Assembly (NCBI GenBank): GCA_025594325.1
Contig: JANHCV010000010.1
Span: 868,001-932,000, forward strand
Reading direction: 5' to 3'
Length of the DNA stretch: 64,000 bases
DNA from: Blastocladiella emersonii ATCC 22665
Taxonomy: Eukaryota > Fungi > Blastocladiomycota
Shown here: in pieces, positions 3,708 to 63,435 of the stretch
Layout of the letters: each line of letters begins with the position of its first letter
Numbering within the stretch: the stretch's first letter is position 1
The notes under the pieces: generated by a model
What the model saw: only the letters and a program-made list of their open reading frames with translations
Told to the model about the DNA's origin: nothing
Database searches by the model: none
Made by a program: the position numbers and the translations under genes

Positions 3708-6700
3708 CTAGAGCCCCTTGAGCGCAATTGCAATCTTCTTCTTGGCGTACTCGCGCGCGGGCGCCCACGACCCGGCCACCGACACGACGAGCGCCAGCAC
3801 CACGACCGTCGTGTACAGGCCCGTCGGGAAGTTGAACGAGAAGGGCATCTCCGTGAACAGGTTGAACTGCAGCGTCAGCGTGACGGCGGTGACGATCCCG
3901 ATGGTCGTGCCCAGCAGGATCGTCGCCAGCACGATGGCTACCGCCTCGTAGATGTACAGGCGGATCACGGTGCCCGCCTACACGACGCGCGAAGGAGCGT
4001 GAGTGCGCTGTCGGGGGACAGGCAAGAGCGTGAGGACTTACGTCGAGGCCAATGGCGCGCAACACGCCAAACTCCCACGCGTTCTCGCGCAGGTTGGCCG
4101 TGAACGAGAGCCACAGGACAAAGAACGAGAGCAGAATCCCGACGAACGCGACTACACACACGAGCGCATCGTCAGTGCCCGTGCCCTACACACCCATCGC
4201 GCCCACCAAACGTACCAATGTAGAACAGCACGTTGATGAAGAACGCAGCGAGCGCCGTCGACTGGAGCTGGTAGTTGAGGTTATCGACCGTGACCTTGTC
4301 GTCGCCGATCGCCGTGTTGAGCTCGTTGATGAACCCCTCGATCTGCAGCGGCGACATGCCCGCGCGCAGCCGGACCAGCGCCGACTGCTTGGGCACGCGG
4401 AGGTCCGTGTCGGGCAGCACCCGCAGTACCGCCGGGCTGACCTTCCCCGGCGCTGCGACGCTCGTCGCCGCCGACACGTTGGTCCCGGCCCACGCGTCGA
4501 TCTCGCGCAGCAGGCGCGCGTAGTGGTCCATGGACACGAGCAGCGGCGATCGGTTCGACGTGAGCCGCGAGATCCCCGTCAAGCTGGGCACCTTGCGCGC
4601 GACGGCGAGCGGGCGCGACAGCTGGCTGCGCGTGGTCGTCCACACCGAGTTGGTCGGCTTGTAGTCGATCTGCAGCACGCAGTTGGTCAGCGCGCCAATG
4701 TACGCGCGGTTCGCGAGCGCCTCGCTGATCACCACGGGCAGCACGTCCCGGTACGCGTCCGTCTGGTTGACCTGCGCCGCGAGCGTGTCGGCCGCGCGCG
4801 CGATGCGGGGCGCCGGCGCCGCGATCGGTTTGCGCGACCCCGCGGTGCTCGGCGCGGGCACCAGTGTGCCGTTCAGTTCCGCGGGCACGCGCCATGGGGA
4901 TACGCCGTCGAGGACGCGGACCGGGATGTAGTACTTGGTCAACGCCACGTCCAGGAAGTTGGCGTGGATCCCCATGACGCGCACCGACGGGCTGCTGAGC
5001 GACGCCATGGGCGCGTACCGCGTGCCCGTCACCGGGTAGTAGCTCGTCAGCGGGAACGTCAGGTACGTGAACCCGGCGACCGCCGTCGAGCTGGCCAGGA
5101 AGTTGGACACGCGCGCCTCGGGCAGCGGCCGCGCGAAGCTGACGCCGTCGATCGAGATGTCCGCGCCGTAGTTCCACTCGAGCGTCTCGGACAGCGTGTC
5201 CGCCTGGAGCCGGAACATGACCGCGGCGAAGATGATGTACGCCAGGCAGAGCGTGAACATGAGGGCGGTTTTCCCGTTCCTCTTCACGTGCGCCGAGAGG
5301 TTCTTGGCCACCACGTCCATGACGTACCGGTCGCGCGTGCAGACCATGACGATGCGCATCGCGACCAGCTCGAGCAGGTGCTGGAGGACCTGGCCAATGA
5401 GCACCTGGCCGACGACCATGGCGAGCAGGATCACCGTCAGGATGCGGAAGAAGAGCCCGAGGTTACCGAACGTGAACGACAGCGGGATCACGTAGTACAC
5501 GAGGAACCCGATCACCACGAACAGCAGCGCGACCACCGTCTCGCCGAGGTTGATCCCGACGTCGCGCAGCCGCGAAATCGTCACGACCGAGTCGAACACC
5601 ACGTTGTGGTACACGTCCAGCGCATCGCGCAAAGTCTGCGATAGCGCACGCCGGATCGGGACCAGCATGCCCAGCACGGGCAGGACCAGGCCCAGCACGA
5701 GGCCCAGCGACCACGCCGTCGTGTCGAGGCCCAGCGCGATGGGCACCGACGCGAACGTGCTGAGAATGTACTCGACGGGGACGTAGAAGACTACACACGG
5801 TCGCGATGTTAGTGCATCTCGCGTGAGGTCCGAGAGAGCGGATCGGCCGTACCGAGGCACACAATCAGACCGAGGACGATGCCGGGGATCGAATAGTAGA
5901 GCGACTGGATCATCAGGAGCCCAATGAGACTGGCCTGCTGCATGCCGAGGGACCGGAGCATGCCGTACTCAAACGTCTTCTCCTCGACGTCGGCGAGCAG
6001 CAGCGCGTAGATGAGCAGGACTGCGAGCAGCGACAGCACCGCGATCACCGTGAAGAAGATCTCGTTCATGAAGATCTGGATGAACTGGGTCCCCTTGAGC
6101 GCCTGGTTGAGCACATCGAGCACGTCCGCCGGGTAGTCGAGCCCGAGCGCCACCGCCATGGCGTCCGTCACCCGCACGAACGCGCGCTGCCGGTCGACCG
6201 ACGCGCCCGTGTACACGGCGACGCGGTCCTTGATGATGGCCACCATCGACATGGCGTAGTCGGCGAGCCGGAACCCCCGCACGTCGGCCACGGTCAGGTT
6301 GAGCGACTGCGACAGCACCGGGTTCGCGGCGATCTGCGCGGCCGCCCGCTTCAGCAGCACCTCGGTCGGCGCCCGGTCGAGCACGATCACGTTGCCCAGC
6401 GCCTGCGGGTACTTGCCCTGCGGCTTGTCGATGGCGTCGACGATCGTGAACTCCTGGCTCAGCGTCGTCAGCTGGCTCACGTTGTTGTTGGTCGCCGTGT
6501 TTAGCATCAGCTGGTACTGGCCGTCGGGCAGCTGCGTCGCGCCGGCGAGAAGCTGTGCGCGCGGCACGCCGAGGACGAGCGACAGCTGGTCGACTTGCGC
6601 CGAGGTCAGCGTCACGGTCGTGTTGCCGACGTTGGCCGCGGCCGTCGTGTTCGCCTACACACAGCTCGAGAGTCAGCAGCGGATCGGCAAGAGGGCCGCG

Positions 6701-13220: not shown

Positions 13221-15736
13221 ATGTATCGCCGCGTGCTTGAGGTCGCTGCGGTCTTCTTCTTGTTTCTATGCGCGGCGAACGCGGTCAGCACTGAGCGGCG
13301 CATCTCGGCCACCTGCATCCCGCGGTCCGACGCGGCACGGTTCGGCTACGTGCTGGCGCAGGACGGCGCCGACGTCGTTCGCCGCGCCTACCCGAACGTC
13401 ACGTTTGAGTCTGGAGCGTGGGCCTCGTACGTAGCCACCAGCCGTTGTTCTTCGGCTGGACGCCGGACCCCGTCACTGCCATCCACGACATGGTCCGCGT
13501 GAACCTGCCCAGCTACACGACCGCCTGCTGGACGGCTTTCAACATGACCGCGGCGGGGACTTCGTCGACGCGACTCACCTGCGACTGGCCCGTCGAGATG
13601 CTGTAGAAACTCGCGAGTCCGGTGGTCATGGACGCGATCCCACACCTTTCGAAGATGCTCCGCGAGTTCACAATCACCGAGGACACGTTGCGTGGGCTCC
13701 TCGCCGAGTTGCCAAACGCGAACGGCCAGGCCTACGACGTCGCGTGCGACTGGCTGCGTGACCACGGCGCCGTGTGGGAGCCGTGGATCGGAGCGCCGCT
13801 TGCGGATCATGGTACGCGTTCGTGGTCATTATGATCGCGCTCGTGGTCTTCATGTCGCACCGTGTTCACCTCGAGTTCGTCATGTGGCTCGTAGTCGTCC
13901 CGATTCGCACCAACAGCTCGTCGGATCTCGACGCCATCCTCATCATTTGTATCGCCTCGCTCATGGCCGTCCTTGCCGTGGCCGTTCTCGGCGCCACCTG
14001 GCGGTCGCGGAACCAGCCAAGCCTCCGTGTTCAGTCGCCCGCCCTACTCGCGCTTCAGATCGTTGGAGCCCTCGTGTTCGCGCTCAGGCTCGCCGTTCCA
14101 GCCGTCACGGGCGCATCGTCGGGCGCACCGTGCATCGTGCGTGCGTGGCTCATGTCGCTCGGCCTCGTCACTATACAGTTCGCCACCGCGGCCCGGCTGT
14201 GGCACGTCTACGCCATCATAGCAAACGTGTCGTGGTCCGTAACGGTAGTCCACTTCGGCCGACTCACGACGGTCCGTGGCACGACTAACCGCCAGCTCGT
14301 GGTCGCGTTCGTGTTCTTCGCCATGCTTTGCGCCGCTTCACTCGCTCCGTTGACGGTGACCATCGCGCCTTCTGGCGCGGCCATGATCCTCCTCGACATG
14401 TCGCCGGCCGCGTACGCCCGCGCACGCCCGCGTTTGTCCTGCTCCACCGCTATGGGCCGTGGCCATCCCTTTCGCGCTCATTCACGTTCCGCTCGCTGCG
14501 GCCACCGCATGGCTCTCGTCCCGGACGCGCAACTCGATCACCATGGCGAGCGACGCTGCGCCGCAAGGGTACCAGCACCTCGCAGTCGGTATCGCCGCGA
14601 GTGTCGGGATGCTACTCGGTGACCCGAGGCTGCAGCACGTCCACCTGTGGGTCGTCCCAGCACTCACGACGACGCTGACCATGATCCTCCACACTGCGGC
14701 TCTTCCCGTCGCCCTCGTCGTGCTCACGGTCACATCGGCACCCACACGTCTCGTGCGCAAACTTCCATCAAGTGCGAGCAGCGGTGCGGGAGGTCTCGGC
14801 GTCAATGGCGTCAGTGGTGCGACGGCTGCGTCGGGTGCTCGACTCGCCGTGAGCTTGGCGTACTCGGCTCCAAGCCGACGCGGTAGCCTGCCGCATACGC
14901 ACCAGTGGTGGCCTCAGCCCATCATACCTCCGCCAGCACAGGAGGAGCCAGAGGTCGTGGTCGAGCCCATGCCCGGCGCAATGGACACGGACGTATCTGA
15001 AGAGCAGCAGCCCGAGCTTCCGACCGACCTGCCGCCAAGAAACATCTTCGGCACAAACCGCTCGTCCACGTTTGGCACAATCCGGCGTCGTGCGGACGAC
15101 GTGCCCAAGCCCGGCGCCATCACCATCATGCTGAACGCGGACGACACGTCAAGCGTGTGAGTCGCGCCCGATCCGTCCGAATCCACTCCGGGCGCGAGCT
15201 CGTTTGTCGCTCCTGCTGGCGGCGAGCAGCTACCACAGCAGCCAACCCGGCTTCTCTCAACCGCGCTCTACCGCGACGAATCCAGCATCTCGCTGTACCC
15301 GACTTCTCTCGTTAGCTCCGGCGCCGTGCAGCACGAGTGGGCGCGGAGCTTCTAGACCTCGCACTCGGACCGCAGCCCCACAACGCTCCTCGCGCAACTT
15401 CCCGTCTCCAGCACGCGCGAGCCAATCGCTGTCCACCGCACGCGGTGGCCGTGGAATCCGTGGGCCGCTGGGTTTGCTGTCGTGATCCCGAGCCTGCGGC
15501 TGGTCGGCGTCATCCCAACCGCCATGCATGGCGTGACGCCGCGCGGAACCGCGTTCTGGATGCCGGGTAAGGAGGTAGTGTATGTCACGGTACGTTTCGA
15601 CGCTGTCGTCGACCGCTCGGGTCGCGCGAGCGTCCGGGTAGTGCGTGGCAGTCGAGCAGAGTACGAGATCGAGCTTCCCTCCGCGCAGTCGGCGGAGCTG
15701 TGGGTCGCCGCTGCTGAAGAACTTGCTAGAGTGTAA
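13221..15736 (+). pseudogene. Decayed tandem paralogue of the solute-binding-domain/class C 7TM/PH-like receptor at 16257-19396
   Basis: Collinear with 16257-19396. About 660 bp of ectodomain are missing just after the intron-1 donor (about 13427-13445). CAG>TAG at 13604, frameshift near 14450, TGG>TGA at 15158, and further frameshifts before the final IPSLRLV...EELARV segment. Confidence 0.85.
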
Positions 15737-16256: not shown

Positions 16257-19200
16257 ATGTATCCTCGCGCGGTCGCAGTCGCAGCATCCATATTCTTGCT
16301 TCTCTGTGTGTCAACTGCCAGCAGCGTCGAGCGACGACTGCCGTACACTTGCATCCCGCGAGCCGAGGCCGCGCGGTTTGGCTTCGTTGAAGCCCAGGAC
16401 TCGCTTGACGTCGTGCGTCGCGTCTACCCGGCTATCACGCTCGAGTCGCACTCTTGGACCTCGTACGCCTCCAGCCGTAGCACAGGTCTGACTGTTCGGT
16501 CCACTGACAACTGGATGTGGTAGATCAAATGTGACCAACTTCATTGGCGCGATTCTCGCTCGCGACATCCTCGGCCTCGACGTGCGCGTCGTCGAGCGCG
16601 ACGCTCCGTTCGGCATTTACACGCGGCTTGTGAGTGGCCAGGTCTCGGCGGCGCTCGAGATCTGGCCCGTCAATAAGGTCAAGCTGTATCTGCAATACGT
16701 TACGATCGCGCGCACGGTGCACGACATGGGTCAAACCGGGTACACGGGCGTCACGATGTGGAGCTTTCCCGCCACGATCTCGGCGCAGCACCCGGGCATG
16801 ATCTTCGAGTCGTGGCGCTCGCTCCTTCAGCCCGAGACGCTCGAATTGCTTCCACTCGCCGGCTCCACGCCACCGGCGCGTTTAGCCGACGGAACCTTCG
16901 TCTGTACCGTGTCCTGGTGCGCCAACGGGGTTTACACGCCGCCGCAGTGCCAACCCGGCGGCACATGGGCCGGCCGCTGTCGCGAGATGTGGCACATGAA
17001 CCCCGGCGTCAATCCGGGCGAGTCAGAGCAGATGATCCACGACCTTGGCCTTCCCATCGTCGTCGTGTACCTCGGCGCAAGCTACGATTCCCGCGTGACG
17101 GCGTGTCTTGCCGCCGCGAGCCCGACGCAGACCTGCCTCATCTTCGGTTGGACGCCGTTCGCAGCGACAGCAAACTTCGGCCTGCTGCGCGTCAACTTGC
17201 CGAGCTACACGACTGCGTGCTGGTCCGGGTTCAACATGCAGTTTGCTGGGACCTCGTCGACACGCCTTGATTGCGCATGGCCCGTGGAACTGCTGCAGAA
17301 GCTTGCCGGCCCGACCGTCATGGACGCGGTCCCTCAGCTCGCGGCCATGATCCGAGCATTCACTATCACTGAAAGCACGCTCCAAGGTCTCCTGTCCCCG
17401 CTCACGTCGGACAACGACCGGACTTTTGACGTGGCGTGCGAGTGGGTGCGCGATCACGCTGCCGTGTGGAGTCCTTGGATCGCGGCTCCTCCAGCGGATC
17501 ATGGTACGAACTCTTGGTCCACGCCGCGTAATTCAAACTCACCCATGCTCTCCTCCGCTATGTGTAGTCGTACCGTTCCGCCGCACGAGCTGGTCCGACC
17601 TGGACATCTCCCTCATCACCTTCGTCTCGGTTTCTGCTGCAGTCCTGGCTGCGCTTGTGCTCGCCGCGATCTGGCGCTACCGCAAGGAGCCGAGCTTACG
17701 CGTCCAGTCGCCCGCGCTGCTCTCGCTCCAAGTCTGCGGTTCACTCCTCTTTGTGCTTGGCCTCGCGCTTCCCGCGTTTGTAGCCATCGCTACGGGCGCG
17801 TCGTGTATCTCGCGCGCATGGCTCGTTTCACTCGGCCTCGCCACGGTCCAATTCGCCACTGCGGCCCGGCTGTGGCGAGTCTACGCCATCATCGCGAACG
17901 TGTCGTGGTCGGCGGTCCTCTTTGGCCGACTCGTGACGATCCGCGGAACAACGCATCGTCAGCTCATGGTCGCTCTTGCTATCCTTGTCCTCATCGGCGC
18001 CTTTGCTCTTGGCCCGCTGACGGCCGCTCTCATTCGATCGCCCATCAACCCGATACTACTCAACAGCACTCCTCTCGCTTACGCTCACGTTTGCTCGACC
18101 CCGCCCCTCTGCGCCGCCGCGATCCCCGTTGTCCTCATTCACATCCCGCTCGGTGCGGGCACCGCCTGGCTTACGTCACGTACCAAGCACTCGATCACTT
18201 TGACGAGTGACGCCGCGCCGCAGGTGTACAAGCACCTCGTGGTCGGCATCGCTGCGAGTGTCGGACTGCTTTTCGGCGAGCCGAGGCTTTACCTTGTCCA
18301 GCTGTGGGTCGTTCCAGCGCTCGCGGCCACGCTGACGATGCTCTTCCAAACTGCCGCTTTCCCTGTTGCGCTGGTCGCTCTAACCTCGGCCACAGCTCCA
18401 GGCCGACTCGTGCGCAAACTGCGCTCGAACGCCAGTAGCGGCGGCGGTGGCTGTGGGCCGGCGGATTCGGTGACCCAGTCCGTCCCGGGTTCGAACTACT
18501 CGGCTCCTTCGCGAGTGAGCGGTCCGTCCCCAGCAATCACGACCCGCTGGTGGTCTCGGAACAACGTTATGCGGACACAGCAGGATTCGGATGTCGCTTC
18601 CAAGCCCGCGCCCGGCCCAAACGATCCGCTGTCGTCGCTCTCACCGTCGGCCGCTTATCCTAGTCACGTGCGGATGAGCGTGTTCGGCTCGCTGCTCTCG
18701 TCCAAGTTCAACACCGTGCAACGCCGCACGGCCGGCCCGGTGGAGCCTGGCGTGATCACCATGATGCTGGACGCCGACGAGACCGCGAGCGTGTGGGTTG
18801 CCGCCGACCCTGCCGAATCTACTCCGTCTGCCGCTACGCATCCGTCCAAGGACATCGGCGGCGGCGACTCGCTTTCGCAGCAGCCGAGCCGGCTCAAGGC
18901 GAGTGCGCTTTACCAGGAAGATTCGACGGTGTCCACGTCTGTGGCTGTTCTCTCGAGCGCGGATGACGTCCGAGCGACCTGGGCACTCGGGAACCAGAGC
19001 GTGCTACCGCTCCGCAGCTCGTCCAAGCCGACCACGCTGCTCGCACAAGTCCCAGTCATGAGCACGCGGACGTCGGTCTCGATTCGTCGCGCGCGGTGGC
19101 CGTGGACGCCCTGGACCGCTGGATTCGCTGTCGTCGTACCTTCCTTGCGGCTCGTGGCGATCATTCCGGCTGCTGAAGGTGGCACAGCGCCGCGCGGGAC

Positions 19201-19396
19201 TGTGTTTTGGGTTCGCGGCCGGACCTCGGCCACCGATCTCGCGTTCGTTTCCATAACCGACAGCAAGGGCAGAGGAAGCGTCCGCGTGCGCCGCGGCGAC
19301 CGAACGCTCTACGAGATCGAGTTTGATTCTGCGCAGCAGGCGCAGCAATGGGTCGCCGCCGCGACTGAACTGGTCACGGTGGCCGGGGCCGAATGA
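16257..19396 (+). CDS. Receptor: signal peptide + OpuAC/ProX-like (type II) solute-binding domain + class C-like 7TM + PH-like C-terminal domain
   Basis: Introns 16463-16523 and 17504-17567 give one open frame. Ectodomain motifs SWTSS, GAILARDILG, LEIWP, FGWTP and AFTITESTLQGLL...ACEWVRDH..VWSPWI. TM3 CISRAWLVSLG...ARLWRVYAIIAN matches the 7tm_3 pattern. C-terminal YEIEFDSAQQAQQWVAA. Confidence 0.8.
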
Positions 19397-58927: not shown

Positions 58928-60030
58928 TCAAAGGAAATCCGGAAACTCTGCAAGAAGCTCGCCAAAGTCGTAGCCACGCACGATCAACATGCGAACTCGC
59001 TTGCGCCATCATTTGGCGAGCTTGCCGCTCTGCCCTTGATGGAGCAAGACCTGGCGGATCGGTTCAGAGCTTCAAGTTGTTGCTGACCCACCAATCCCAG
59101 CGCCTGAGGATCTCTGACTCGCGGCGGCCATTAGCGTCCATGTCATTCCAATCAACATCCGACCAGTTGCTTGGGCAAATGAATTGGTGACTTGGCAAGT
59201 TGTCGTGGCACCACGAAAGCGCTGCAATATTGTTGGATCGGCTCGCGCGCTCAATCATTTGTCCCCAGAAGGAGGGTTTGAGCTTGCGCGCCGCGCTTTT
59301 GTGCACTGAGTCGGGTTCGGAACCAGCATCAGAATCCGAGTCTGGCTGCGAGTCAGTGTCAGACTCGGACTTCGAGCCAAAGTTGGTAATCGGCATAGTT
59401 TCGGAGAACCAATCAAGAATCGCTGCGTGCTCGAGAGAGACGGCGAGCTCAAAGGCCGACCACCACTCGAGAACAGAAAAGTGTCCAGCCCGGACGGCAT
59501 CGTCGACTGCGCGCTCCGTGTAGCCCTCGATTTGCTCGTTTTCCACGAGCCAGTTGAGAACGTCGACGTGGCCGTGGGCGGACGCAACATCGGCGAGGTG
59601 CGGGCCGTCGAAGTCCTCGTCGTCGTACTCGTCCATGAAGTCGTTTGCAAGGAGCCAAGCGAGTACGTGAACGTGTCCGTTAGCGGCGGCAACTTCGGCG
59701 GGGTGCTGCGCGCCGTCGAAAAAGTTCCAGTCCCACTCGGAAACAAAGTCATCCAGCAGGTCGATCCGTCCCGCGGCGCACAAAAGTCGGAAACGGAAGT
59801 TGGCCTCGTCGCCGTTCTCCGTCGGACCGCGGTACTTGAGCAGTAGTGCTCGAAGGTCATCGTGGCCGGGGTCCAGGGCGCGCTGGATGCATTCGTGAAG
59901 CGAATGGCTCAAGGCAACCAGGCGAAGCCGCTTGAGGCCCGGAAGCACGTGGAGCAGCGGGAGCGGGTCGGCACCGCGGGGGTCGAGCAGTACGGCTTGG
60001 CAGAAAATCTCCTCGGCGAGCTCATATGAG
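58928..60030 (-). pseudogene. F-box-like + ankyrin-like copy 5, a recent duplicate of copy 4, decayed
   Basis: 59490-60000 is nearly identical to 46520-47030. The ATG region is deleted, there is an in-frame internal deletion (VLEWW joined to SAFELAVSL), and a frameshift plus TGG>TGA precede the conserved AEFPDFL* end. Confidence 0.85.
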
Positions 60031-60716
60031 CCAACCGCGATCAAAGGCGGCGAGGCGAAACGGCCGTCTTTGGCGCCCACTCGGATCACATGATTGATCG
60101 TCACGTCTCAACGCTTTCCTGTCTCCTCCTTTTGATCTTATCTCACTTTTGCGCCCCTCCTGTTTGACCAATATCACATATTGCGGTGTTCTCTGGGGCT
60201 AGAAATACTCGTTGCGCTGAGGATGGGGTCACTTCTCAACGACGTTGCTTCAAACTCCCGTGCTTGCGAGCGGAGACTCGCTTGCTGGTAGGAATGAAAA
60301 GGGGAGCTGTATAAGCCAGCACTTACATCCACTTTGAGCCATGGGGACGCGTTACGCGTTAGTAACGGGGTCACGCTGCGCCGGACTGGGACGCGCGAAC
60401 ACGCGTTTGTCTCACGCGGGCTGCGAGACGGGCCAAAATACGTCAGGGCCGGACTCATGCCGCGTTTCTGGATTTCTCATGCCCCCCCCCCCCCCCCGAA
60501 CGTGGACACCTCACAGTCATGGGAGCACGCCTGTTGGTTGCGCGCGCCGTCGTTGTTTCGCGCGTTGACCAGGCGGCGTGACACCCGGCTGGCAAGCGGT
60601 GATCTGGACCGGGTGCGTTCGCATGCCGCGCTCCTTGTCACCCAAGTGGTGAATGTGAAATCCTATGCCACTTCGATCGTCACGCGCCATATGTTCTCAA
60701 GGTAATCCATGACACC

Positions 60717-63435
60717 ATGAAGCAATGTATCTCCTGCACTTTATGCATCGTCGCCGTGGCCCTCTCGCTGATATCTGTGGCCAACTGCGCCGCGATCGCA
60801 GACAGACCGATCCGCATGCTGTTCTGGGCATGGGGCGGCGAGACGGCGCTGTTCCAGGCCCACTTTGACGAATGGACCAACACCTCGGGGATCAAAGTGC
60901 AGGTCGACGTGCCACGCGTGTCTGGCGGAGCGACCGCGGATGAGTACTTTGGCATGCTCAAGGCCATGGAGGACCAGAGAATCGCGTATTACGATATCGT
61001 AGTCCTCGACGTGACCTGGCCTGCGCTGCTTACCACTCTACTCTTGCCGCTTGACGGTCTGGTCGACGCGAGTTCCATAGCGGTTCATGATCAGAGCTTC
61101 GTCAACGAGGCGCGGGTCGGCGGCAAGCTTTACGCGCTCCCGTACACGACCACCATGTCGCTGCTCTACTACCGCGCCGACATTCTCGCCGACTATGGTT
61201 ACACTTCAGCGCCGCAAACGGTACGTTCCGTTAGTGAGACAGACGAGCGAGAAATTGGCAGCCAACACGAGTCTACCGTATAGTGGGACGAGATGGAGGG
61301 CATGCTCGAGCGCATTTTGCCCAGCGAGCAGACCAAGCGACCGGGCTTCCACGGATACGTTGGCCAGCTCAAGGCGTTCGAGGGTCTCACGTGTAACGCC
61401 ATGGAGCTGCTTGGCAGCTACGGCGCGGGCACCGTCGTGGAGCCCGACGGCTCCATCTCCACCGCCAACTCGACGCGGCGGGACGCGGCCGTGGCCGCCA
61501 TGACGCGGTTCCGCAGCTGGGTCACGCGCGGGTTCATCCAACCGTCGGTGCTGACCATGGACGAGGTGCCTGCTTACAATGCTTGGTTTTCGGGAAATGC
61601 GCTGTTTATGCGGAACTGGTTCTACGGTAACTTTCCCGTTGACTTTACATCGGGGATCGCACCATTACCCGGTAACACGCCCGACCTCGCCGGCTTTACG
61701 ACCAACGCCGCGAGCTACTTTGGGATCAACCGGTTCACGGCCGACCCGATCCGCACGGCAAAAGTGCTTGAGTTCATCACGGGCACAGAGTCGCAGCGCA
61801 AGTGGGCCGCTGAGCTCAGCTTCATTCCGACTATCAAGAGCGTGATTCAAGGTGCGTGCTTTGTCGCGTATCACTTCACGATCGCTGACATTACCGACGT
61901 GTGTAGACGAGTCGATCTGCACCATGCTCGGCAGCTGCAACGTCAGCGGCAAGTTGCGGATGGTTTCCCGCCCCGCTCTTGCAACGGGCTCGTCGTACCC
62001 TGCCGTGTCCGAGGCCATCATCAACGGATGGAGGCAGGCCTTCAGCGGATACCTCACACCTGCGGCCGCTGTGACGCGGCTGACCCGCCGGCTCGCGGCC
62101 ATTCTGTCCATCGACATTCTCGGACCTCCTGTCGTGGTTCAGTGGACGGACTTTTCCGGGATCGTGACCATCATTGCGTTCGTTATCGCCGAGGTTGTGG
62201 TTGTCGCGTCCACGGTGGCGCTTGTCCGCCACAAGCGCTCGGCGCTCGCGCGTCGCGTCTCGTTCCGCTTGCTTCTCTCAATGCTTGGCGGGCTTGCCGT
62301 GACGGCGGTGTGGCCGCTGCTCTTCATCGGCCAGCGCACCGGGCTTCAATGTTTCTTGCAGATCGCCATCCTCGCTTGCGCTTGGGCCGTGATTCTCGCA
62401 TGCATGGCTGTCCAGGACTTGCGCGTCTATCTCATTGTTTCGAGCCCGCTGCGTCGCGTCGCCAGTGACGTGACTCGAGTCCTGCGCGCATTCATCATCG
62501 TCGTCATCTTGCTCCAGTGTCTCGGGCTGCTCATGTGGGGGCTCGTCAGCCCGCCGTCGGCGGCCATGTACGTCGTGGCTGACGAGTGGGAGTACCTTGC
62601 GTGCTCGGAAGGCACAACACCCGAGCTTCTCGCGATCCCAGCCTCGGTTGTTGCTGCTCTCGTCGCACTAAACATGTGGCTCGCGTATCGCTCCAAGGCC
62701 AGCGAGGTCGTCATGACCAAGCGACAGTCGCCGACGCTTCAGATTCTCTACGCGATTTGTCTCATCACGGTCATCCAGGTACATCTCTCGAGTATGACCG
62801 GCCACTCGCTCCCACGGTTGCTGACGTTAACGCGTGTGTAGGGTATTTCCCTCAAGATCCCCCAACTCACACCTTCGGCTTGCTCTCTCATCTTCGCCAT
62901 CACCACACTTGTCCTCGTCGCGACCGTGTGCAAGGTTTACATTCTCCACCAGCTGGAGCCGGACTCGGAGGATACTACAAGCCCGTGGCTGGGCATGACG
63001 CGCGCGGGCACCGAATCCTCATTCGGCACTAACGTGGCCTCAACTCCGTCGAGTATCCATGCACCAGGCTCCATGCACCGCGACTTGTCACCAACGAGCG
63101 ACTGCACGCCCTGCTTTTCGATCGCCACAGCCGACTTGGCGCTGCGCACCGCCGCGTCGTCGTTTTTCGTGGAGCTGACGCCCTGTGTACCGTGTCAGCT
63201 GCAGTTGTTCACTCGTCAGGCAGTGCTGATCGCGACCGAGGTCTCGGGCCGCCGGCGTTACCGCGTGGCCATCGCCTTGCGCACGCTCGCTGCGGTGGAG
63301 TTTGCATCCGCGTCACAGACTTGCTTGCGCCTCCAGTTGCGCGGCCGTGTCGTTGACGTGGTCGGACCCACGGCGACGCTCGCGCAATGGAAACAGGCGT
63401 TGAGCGAGTTTGTTCGCGAGGAACCGGGGCATTGA
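60717..63435 (+). CDS. Receptor: signal peptide + sugar-binding SBP family 1 (type II) domain + class C-like 7TM + PH-like C-terminal domain
   Basis: Introns 61221-61283, 61852-61906 and 62779-62841 give one open frame. YDIVVLDVTWP, GKLYALPY....LLYYRADIL..YGY..APQTWDEM, YVGQLKAFEGLTCN and GNALFMRNW. TM2-3 LLFIGQRTGLQCFLQ...DLRVYLIVSSP; ECL2 WEYLAC. Confidence 0.85.

Follow-up and report, generated by a model that had tools for sequence, protein, structure and literature searches.

The DNA analyzed is a window of 64,000 nucleotides from the genome of Blastocladiella emersonii ATCC 22665 (contig JANHCV010000010.1, positions 868,001 to 932,000), and the gene in question resides at 60717-63435 of this window, on the plus strand. 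By protein search it corresponds to the hypothetical protein H9P43_007777 of the same strain. The gene is intact, is made up of four exons separated by three GT..AG introns of 63, 55 and 63 nt, and has a coding sequence of 2538 nt in which the sole stop is terminal, giving a protein of 845 residues. A first-pass annotation, made from the DNA letters, had described here a four-exon gene in which a maltose/trehalose-like substrate-binding protein (SBP) of family 1 is joined to a class C seven-transmembrane (7TM) bundle and a PH-like tail. Each of these parts was recovered, and all six SBP motifs quoted in that annotation are present in the translation. The parts of the gene are listed below (TM, transmembrane segment; AF2, AlphaFold2).

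60717-61220, plus strand: exon 1 (residues 1-168), with the signal peptide and the start of the SBP; SBP_bac_1 E 6.7e-9
60717-60788, plus strand: predicted signal peptide (residues 1-24), an ATG followed by a hydrophobic stretch
61221-61283, plus strand: intron 1, 63 nt, GTACGT..TAG, removing an in-frame stop at 61281-61283
61284-61851, plus strand: exon 2 (residues 169-357 and the first base of codon 358), central part of the SBP
61852-61906, plus strand: intron 2, 55 nt, GTGCGT..TAG, its junction shared by the deposited model P0001
61907-62778, plus strand: exon 3 (residues 358-648), with the last SBP helices (to about residue 424), the GPP linker and TM1-TM6
62779-62841, plus strand: intron 3, 63 nt, GTACAT..TAG, where the deposited model reads into a stop
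62842-63435, plus strand: exon 4 (residues 649-845 and the stop), with TM7, linker and PH-like domain
60816-62109, plus strand: ectodomain of the SBP_bac_1 / ThuE-TMBP-αGlyBP type (residues 34-425, introns included)
62155-62946, plus strand: class C 7tm_3 bundle (residues 441-683, intron 3 included), seven hydrophobic segments
to 62946, plus strand: TM7 (to about residue 683), in exon 4
62947-63117, plus strand: linker following TM7, about 55 residues, low-confidence in AF2
63118-63405, plus strand: PH-like domain (residues 741-836), from the AF2 fold and Foldseek

The public model of H9P43_007777 (P0001, 635 residues) begins at Met34 of the 845-residue model, and is therefore devoid of the signal peptide; the two part at residue 649, after which P0001 continues for just 20 residues, without TM7 and the tail. 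Full-length paralogues align across exon 4, supporting the 845-residue model, and the paralogue P0002 opens as H9P43_007777 does, with a signal sequence and the motif PIR.L. At the intron 1 junction the end of exon 1 corresponds to residue 140, and the start of exon 2 to residue 141, of PDB entry 6JB0, exon 2 matching residues 141-327 of this structure with E 6.7e-25 (phmmer). Exon 3 alone is recognized as 7tm_3 (Pfam, E 6.6e-14), and because it holds both the last SBP helices and TM1-TM6, the SBP-7TM fusion is independent of any splice. Bacterial contamination as the source of the gene was ruled out, spliceosomal introns being present, and SBP and 7TM sequences residing in one exon.

The ectodomain matches Pfam SBP_bac_1 (PF01547) with E 6e-16 and 59.7 bits, the cut-off being 26, and SBP_bac_8 with 53.8 bits. 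Homology to solved bacterial proteins spans its whole length at 26-30% identity, with E 1.1e-47 for Thermus thermophilus αGlyBP (6JB0; 6J9W series; chain residues 38-401 of 408), 1.6e-32 for Thermococcus litoralis TMBP (1EU8), and 2.4e-31 for Thermotoga maritima MalE3 (6DTQ). The nearest bacterial proteins, with 32-34% identity across some 95% of the ectodomain, are named at their source as trehalose/maltose transport substrate-binding proteins. Folding by AF2 was carried out in two pieces, P0001:1-615 (SBP and TM1-TM6) and exon 4. The model of the first piece has a mean pLDDT (predicted local distance difference test) of 93.9 and a pTM (predicted TM-score) of 0.86, and Foldseek retrieved with it structures of the αGlyBP/TMBP/MalE3 type at target-normalised TM-scores of 0.78-0.86, the best being the ligand-free forms 6JAL, 6DTR and 7NBZ. 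The assignment of the ectodomain to the trehalose/maltose-type SBPs of family 1 is correct at the family level.

The membrane part of H9P43_007777 is a class C bundle with the fold of a G protein-coupled receptor (GPCR). Pfam 7tm_3 (PF00003) is matched with E 1.6e-13 and 51.3 bits (52.6 in a second scan), against a gathering cut-off of 33.5, and single-sequence phmmer searches relate the bundle to the TM domain of mGlu1 (E 8e-4) and to CaSR (E 5e-3). The cysteines of TM3 and of extracellular loop 2 (ECL2), C506 and C590 (C473 and C557 in P0001), occupy the sole columns conserved at 90% or more in 60 relatives, and ECL2 is a beta-hairpin in the AF2 model (P0001 542-558). In the same model the last SBP helices, at P0001 376-391, are followed by TM1 at 407-432, the two being joined by about 15 residues of conserved linker sequence that contains GPP. 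The Pfam scan detected only SBP_bac_1 and SBP_bac_8 N-terminal of the bundle, and neither the cysteine-rich domain NCD3G nor a type I ANF/Venus flytrap ectodomain. GABA-B receptors likewise have no NCD3G, and its absence is compatible with class C. The 7tm_3 fold is not known to have transport activity.

About 160 residues follow the bundle. The AF2 model of exon 4, obtained from a 10-sequence alignment, consists of TM7, a low-confidence linker, and seven strands capped by a C-terminal helix (residues 177-188 of the model), with pLDDT 80-93. W183 is invariant in the tail alignment, matching the conserved tryptophan found in the C-terminal helix of PH domains. Foldseek retrieved only PH and PH-like folds at probability 1.00 (GRK2 PH, ArhGAP27, ARAP3, Slm1), with target-normalised TM-scores of at most 0.72, and E values down to 9e-6 against AFDB/Swiss-Prot. 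An iterated profile detected the tail in 39 of the collected proteins, in both Blastocladiomycota and Chytridiomycota. A profile built from SBP-type tails only (36 sequences, target left out) recognized the tail of an OpuAC-type receptor residing in the same window (17426-19393, E 1.5e-6), and that of the ANF-type receptor P0055 (E 2.6e-6). A comparison by hhalign of the 10-sequence tail alignment with the tail of the OpuAC receptor was not significant (probability 0.2). P0055, a protein of 905 residues, features ANF_receptor, 7tm_3 and a C-terminal Pfam PH match with E 1e-3, below the cut-off; because this ANF-type receptor has it, the PH tail is not tied to SBP-type ectodomains. In the β1-β2 stretch of the tail chytrid members read R-T-A-K-S-K and H9P43_007777 reads R-T-A-A-S-S, and the two basic residues lost in the subclade of the latter could matter for lipid binding.

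At the family level the 7tm_3 bundles, and with them a homologous PH-like tail, are combined with different ectodomains (SBP_bac_1, OpuAC, ANF, LamG). The earlier proposal that diverse SBPs had been plugged onto one GPCR chassis holds to this extent; it fits less well at the bundle, the 7TM of the downstream OpuAC receptor of the window being only 21-22% identical to that of H9P43_007777.

The ligand pocket was compared by sequence alignment only. R49, D118, W287 and R356 of αGlyBP are the residues mutated by crystallographers, as judged from PDB titles; the corresponding residues of H9P43_007777 are Y77, T146, S312 and R379, so that only R356 is retained. G285 and G286 are replaced by A310 and A311, and L284 by N309. 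Among 35 fungal receptor ectodomains D118 is found in 23, W287 in 17, and R356 in all. The signature D-W-GG-W-R is retained in chytrid members and in the B. emersonii paralogues H9P43_006038, 006061 and 006099. H9P43_007777 belongs to a 12-member subclade from Blastocladiella, Catenaria and Allomyces in which W287 is missing altogether, D118 is kept in two members, and G286 is mostly changed to A.

For the SBP-7TM family as a whole a sugar would be a fair guess at the ligand. The ligand of H9P43_007777 has probably changed to something other than trehalose or maltose, and the sequence does not suffice to name it. The view that this protein has kept the bacterial specificity, and senses α-glucoside disaccharides (trehalose, maltose or sucrose), appears unlikely. 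It draws on the fact that α-linked disaccharides are the ligands of all the closest relatives that have been solved or named (PMC12096829, PMC7949145), on the retention in H9P43_007777 of the equivalents of D70, W73, W237, R246, W248 and R356, and on the persistence of D118/G285/G286/W287/R356 in most chytrid and other blastoclad members. Yet H9P43_007777 has Y, T, A, A and S at R49, D118, G285, G286 and W287, its subclade of 12 is without W287 and mostly without D118, and the αGlyBP mutants had been designed at D118, W287, R49 and R356. The possible sugar sensor of the first-pass annotation is therefore a weak description of H9P43_007777, since the subclade lost the R49, D118 and W287 equivalents.

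Changes are found in the bundle as well. The stretch K..R...IF at the end of TM3, and an E before TM6, are the consensus both in other SBP-type receptors and in non-SBP relatives; in H9P43_007777 and its subclade the K is replaced by Q, and the E by R. The two sites are presumably the K3.50/E6.35 ionic lock of class C receptors, known from mGlu TM structures. Pocket and K3.50/E6.35 being both altered, the subclade is derived inside as well as outside the membrane.

SBP-7tm_3 fusions with a named source were found only in zoosporic fungi, in two phyla: the Blastocladiomycota (Blastocladiella, Catenaria, Allomyces, Paraphysoderma) and the Chytridiomycota (Phlyctochytrium, Thoreauomyces, Dinochytrium, Clydaea, Entophlyctis, Irineochytrium, Chytriomyces, Fimicolochytrium). 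No gut-fungal or Plasmodiophora protein is named among the 69 representative matches, about 40 of which were nameable. The 35 fungal SBP domains group together in the ectodomain tree, as a single clade set against 111 bacterial proteins (SH-aLRT, the Shimodaira-Hasegawa-like approximate likelihood ratio test, 100), and the nearest bacterial clade is that of named trehalose/maltose SBPs. In the 7TM tree calculated under a mixture model, one branch (support 45/86) separates the SBP-type bundles and that of P0059, a LamG/pentaxin receptor, from the remainder, and monophyly of the SBP-type bundles alone is not rejected by the approximately unbiased (AU) test (p-AU 0.22). The 7TM tree obtained under LG+G4, which split SBP-type bundles in two and placed the H9P43_007777 clade beside long branches, was set aside as a long-branch artefact in the light of the mixture model and the AU test. 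In both trees the blastoclad members form a clade, the fast-evolving branches of the H9P43_007777 subclade are nested within it, and both the ectodomain clade and the 7TM clade include Allomyces members.

The broad congruence of ectodomain and 7TM trees argues for an ancient single fusion rather than recent swapping, and the domain swapping which separate trees of the two parts had been proposed to reveal was not borne out. The data fit one old fusion, common to Blastocladiomycota and Chytridiomycota and passed on as a unit, later replacement of the ectodomain being occasional at most. P0059 is likely a case of such replacement, its 7TM being sister to that of an Entophlyctis SBP-type receptor (95/98). 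This protein of 1643 residues has a Laminin_G_3/Pentaxin ectodomain and a 7tm_3 bundle, and gives a weak match to the PH-like tail.

Selection was monitored against the complete sister copy of H9P43_007777 found at locus L001, on another contig of the genome. Synonymous divergence (dS) is about 0.7. The ratio of nonsynonymous to synonymous divergence (dN/dS) is 0.22 for the SBP, 0.17 for the 7TM and 0.19 for the PH fold, 0.59 for the linker and 0.93 for the signal peptide. All three folds are under purifying selection, which speaks against a decaying copy. It is accordingly very improbable that H9P43_007777 represents a paralogue in decay, or one unable to signal, whose open reading frame persists with no sensory role, though its branches are fast in both trees, conserved pocket residues and K3.50/E6.35 are lost, and one of the sister copies at the paralogous locus is truncated at its 5' end. 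All 845 codons stand in one uninterrupted frame and the introns are canonical, the folded domains stay at 0.17-0.22 against 0.59-0.93 for linker and signal peptide, and the derived residues are common to Blastocladiella, Catenaria and Allomyces, pointing to a new state that has been retained. A solute transporter or 'transceptor' is just as improbable: SBPs of this family normally feed ATP-binding cassette (ABC) importers, and the Plasmodiophora genome paper calls SBP_bac_1/PBP-7tm_3 fusions 'novel putative transporters' (PMC4815078), but what crosses the membrane is a 7tm_3 bundle showing the hallmarks of class C, and the gene, in which SBP and 7TM are joined covalently, has no ABC permease or ATPase part.

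H9P43_007777 is thus best read, with good though not full confidence, as a four-part receptor stemming from the old fusion, a member of a fast-evolving blastoclad subclade in which the pocket has been rebuilt and K3.50/E6.35 lost. Several points weigh against this reading. The 845-residue splicing model is a prediction from canonical signals and homology. No Pfam family, PF00169 included, matches the tail of H9P43_007777 at E <= 1. Resolution is poor along the backbone of the 7TM tree, the clade of SBP-type bundles having a support of just 45/86, and the bacterial sample derives from one query, so that the SBP may have been acquired a second time, from a donor outside this sample. Finally, the loss of K3.50/E6.35 could mean that signalling is altered, or that there is none through G proteins.

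If H9P43_007777 works as such a receptor, the signal peptide would be cleaved, leaving outside the cell a two-lobed SBP of the bacterial trehalose/maltose (ThuE/TMBP/αGlyBP) lineage. Binding of a small solute would close this domain, and the short linker and the ECL2 hairpin would relay the closure to the 7TM bundle, which may then use a G protein and/or the cytosolic PH tail to signal within the cell. We suggest more tentatively, at somewhat less than even chances, that class C GPCRs of zoosporic fungi share a built-in cytosolic PH fold, hitherto undescribed, across ectodomains (SBP_bac_1, OpuAC, ANF), and that the H9P43_007777 subclade re-tuned the ThuE-derived pocket to a new, non-disaccharide ligand, dropping K3.50/E6.35. 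If so, the subclade would exemplify receptor neofunctionalisation in nature, changes on the outside being coupled to changes within the membrane.

To our knowledge, the receptors for zoospore chemotaxis in fungi are still undefined by experiment. Members of the SBP-7TM family are reasonable candidates for this role; that they exist, and by what logic their domains are combined, was published as early as 2012. The present analysis adds a corrected full-length model of H9P43_007777, and evidence that the fusion is ancient and was inherited as a unit, not freely shuffled. It also adds the contrast between the remodelled pocket of H9P43_007777 and H9P43_006123 and the α-glycoside signature of H9P43_006038, 006061 and the chytrid members. 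A fourth addition is independent confirmation that the conserved core of these receptors includes a PH-fold tail, itself under purifying selection; no paper describing the PH tail of zoosporic-fungal class C receptors was found.

The combination of an SBP with a class C 7TM bundle is already published, and the idea behind H9P43_007777 is not new. Krishnan et al. (2012) described Glutamate-family GPCRs of Allomyces macrogynus with N-termini of the SBP_bac_1 type (8 sequences) and of the OpuAC type (6 sequences) (PMC3251606). These receptors resemble H9P43_007777 in phylum and in featuring SBP_bac_1 and 7tm_3; their catalogue covers N-terminal domains only, with no C-terminal or PH domain, ligand-site analysis or ectodomain tree, whereas H9P43_007777 is a Blastocladiella gene of a derived subclade. 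In gut fungi (Neocallimastigomycota), Seppälä et al. (2016) described non-canonical class C GPCRs with sugar-like ectodomains of SBP type II, and proposed repeated fusions (PMC5168858). Both these and the Plasmodiophora fusions likewise carry a bacterial SBP of the sugar type on a class C bundle.

αGlyBP, TMBP and MalE3 share with H9P43_007777 whole-length homology, the fold, and the D70, W237 and R356 equivalents, but are free periplasmic proteins or lipoproteins serving as partners of ABC importers, whereas the SBP of H9P43_007777 is fused to a 7TM bundle and has R49, D118, G285, G286 and W287 replaced. Metazoan class C receptors (mGlu, CaSR, GABA-B, TAS1R) have in common with it the 7tm_3 bundle, the TM3-ECL2 disulfide cysteines, the ECL2 hairpin, the motif [K/R]xY in TM7, and a large ectodomain for ligand binding, drawn from the periplasmic-binding-protein superfamily. 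H9P43_007777 differs from them in having a type II SBP (Pfam clan PBP) in place of the type I ANF/Venus flytrap domain, no NCD3G, Q and R at K3.50 and E6.35 in its subclade, and a C-terminal PH fold.

The OpuAC-type class C receptors of the window are arranged in tandem (Pfam OpuAC E 5e-4; 7tm_3 E 5.5e-10 and 2.8e-8).

13774-15160, plus strand: upstream OpuAC-type receptor, divided between two reading frames
16531-19396, plus strand: downstream OpuAC-type receptor

The 7TM of the downstream receptor sits on a long branch of the tree, and BLASTP of the H9P43_007777 bundle against it gave E 5.7. SBP-type and OpuAC receptors of the window are deep relatives, not the products of a recent swap.

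At locus L001 the deposited 1074-residue model of H9P43_006123 (P0070) fuses two sister copies of H9P43_007777.

L001:9905-11187: 5'-truncated copy, with 7TM and PH tail and no ectodomain
L001:11533-14298: complete copy, 72-75% identical to H9P43_007777

Relative to H9P43_007777, dN/dS of the truncated copy is 0.13-0.27. About 4 kb from the pair, at L001:2529-5792 on the minus strand, lies H9P43_006120 (P0022, 948 residues), a paralogue with SBP_bac_8 and 7tm_3. The tags of most family members in B. emersonii lie in the range 006038-006125, and these genes share a single 2.0-Mb contig. Upstream of H9P43_007777, at 59064-60104 of the window on the minus strand, resides a divergent open reading frame of 346 residues with ankyrin repeats (Ank_4, E 3e-7), and an ankyrin gene (L001:1030-2493) also adjoins the paralogous cluster in L001.

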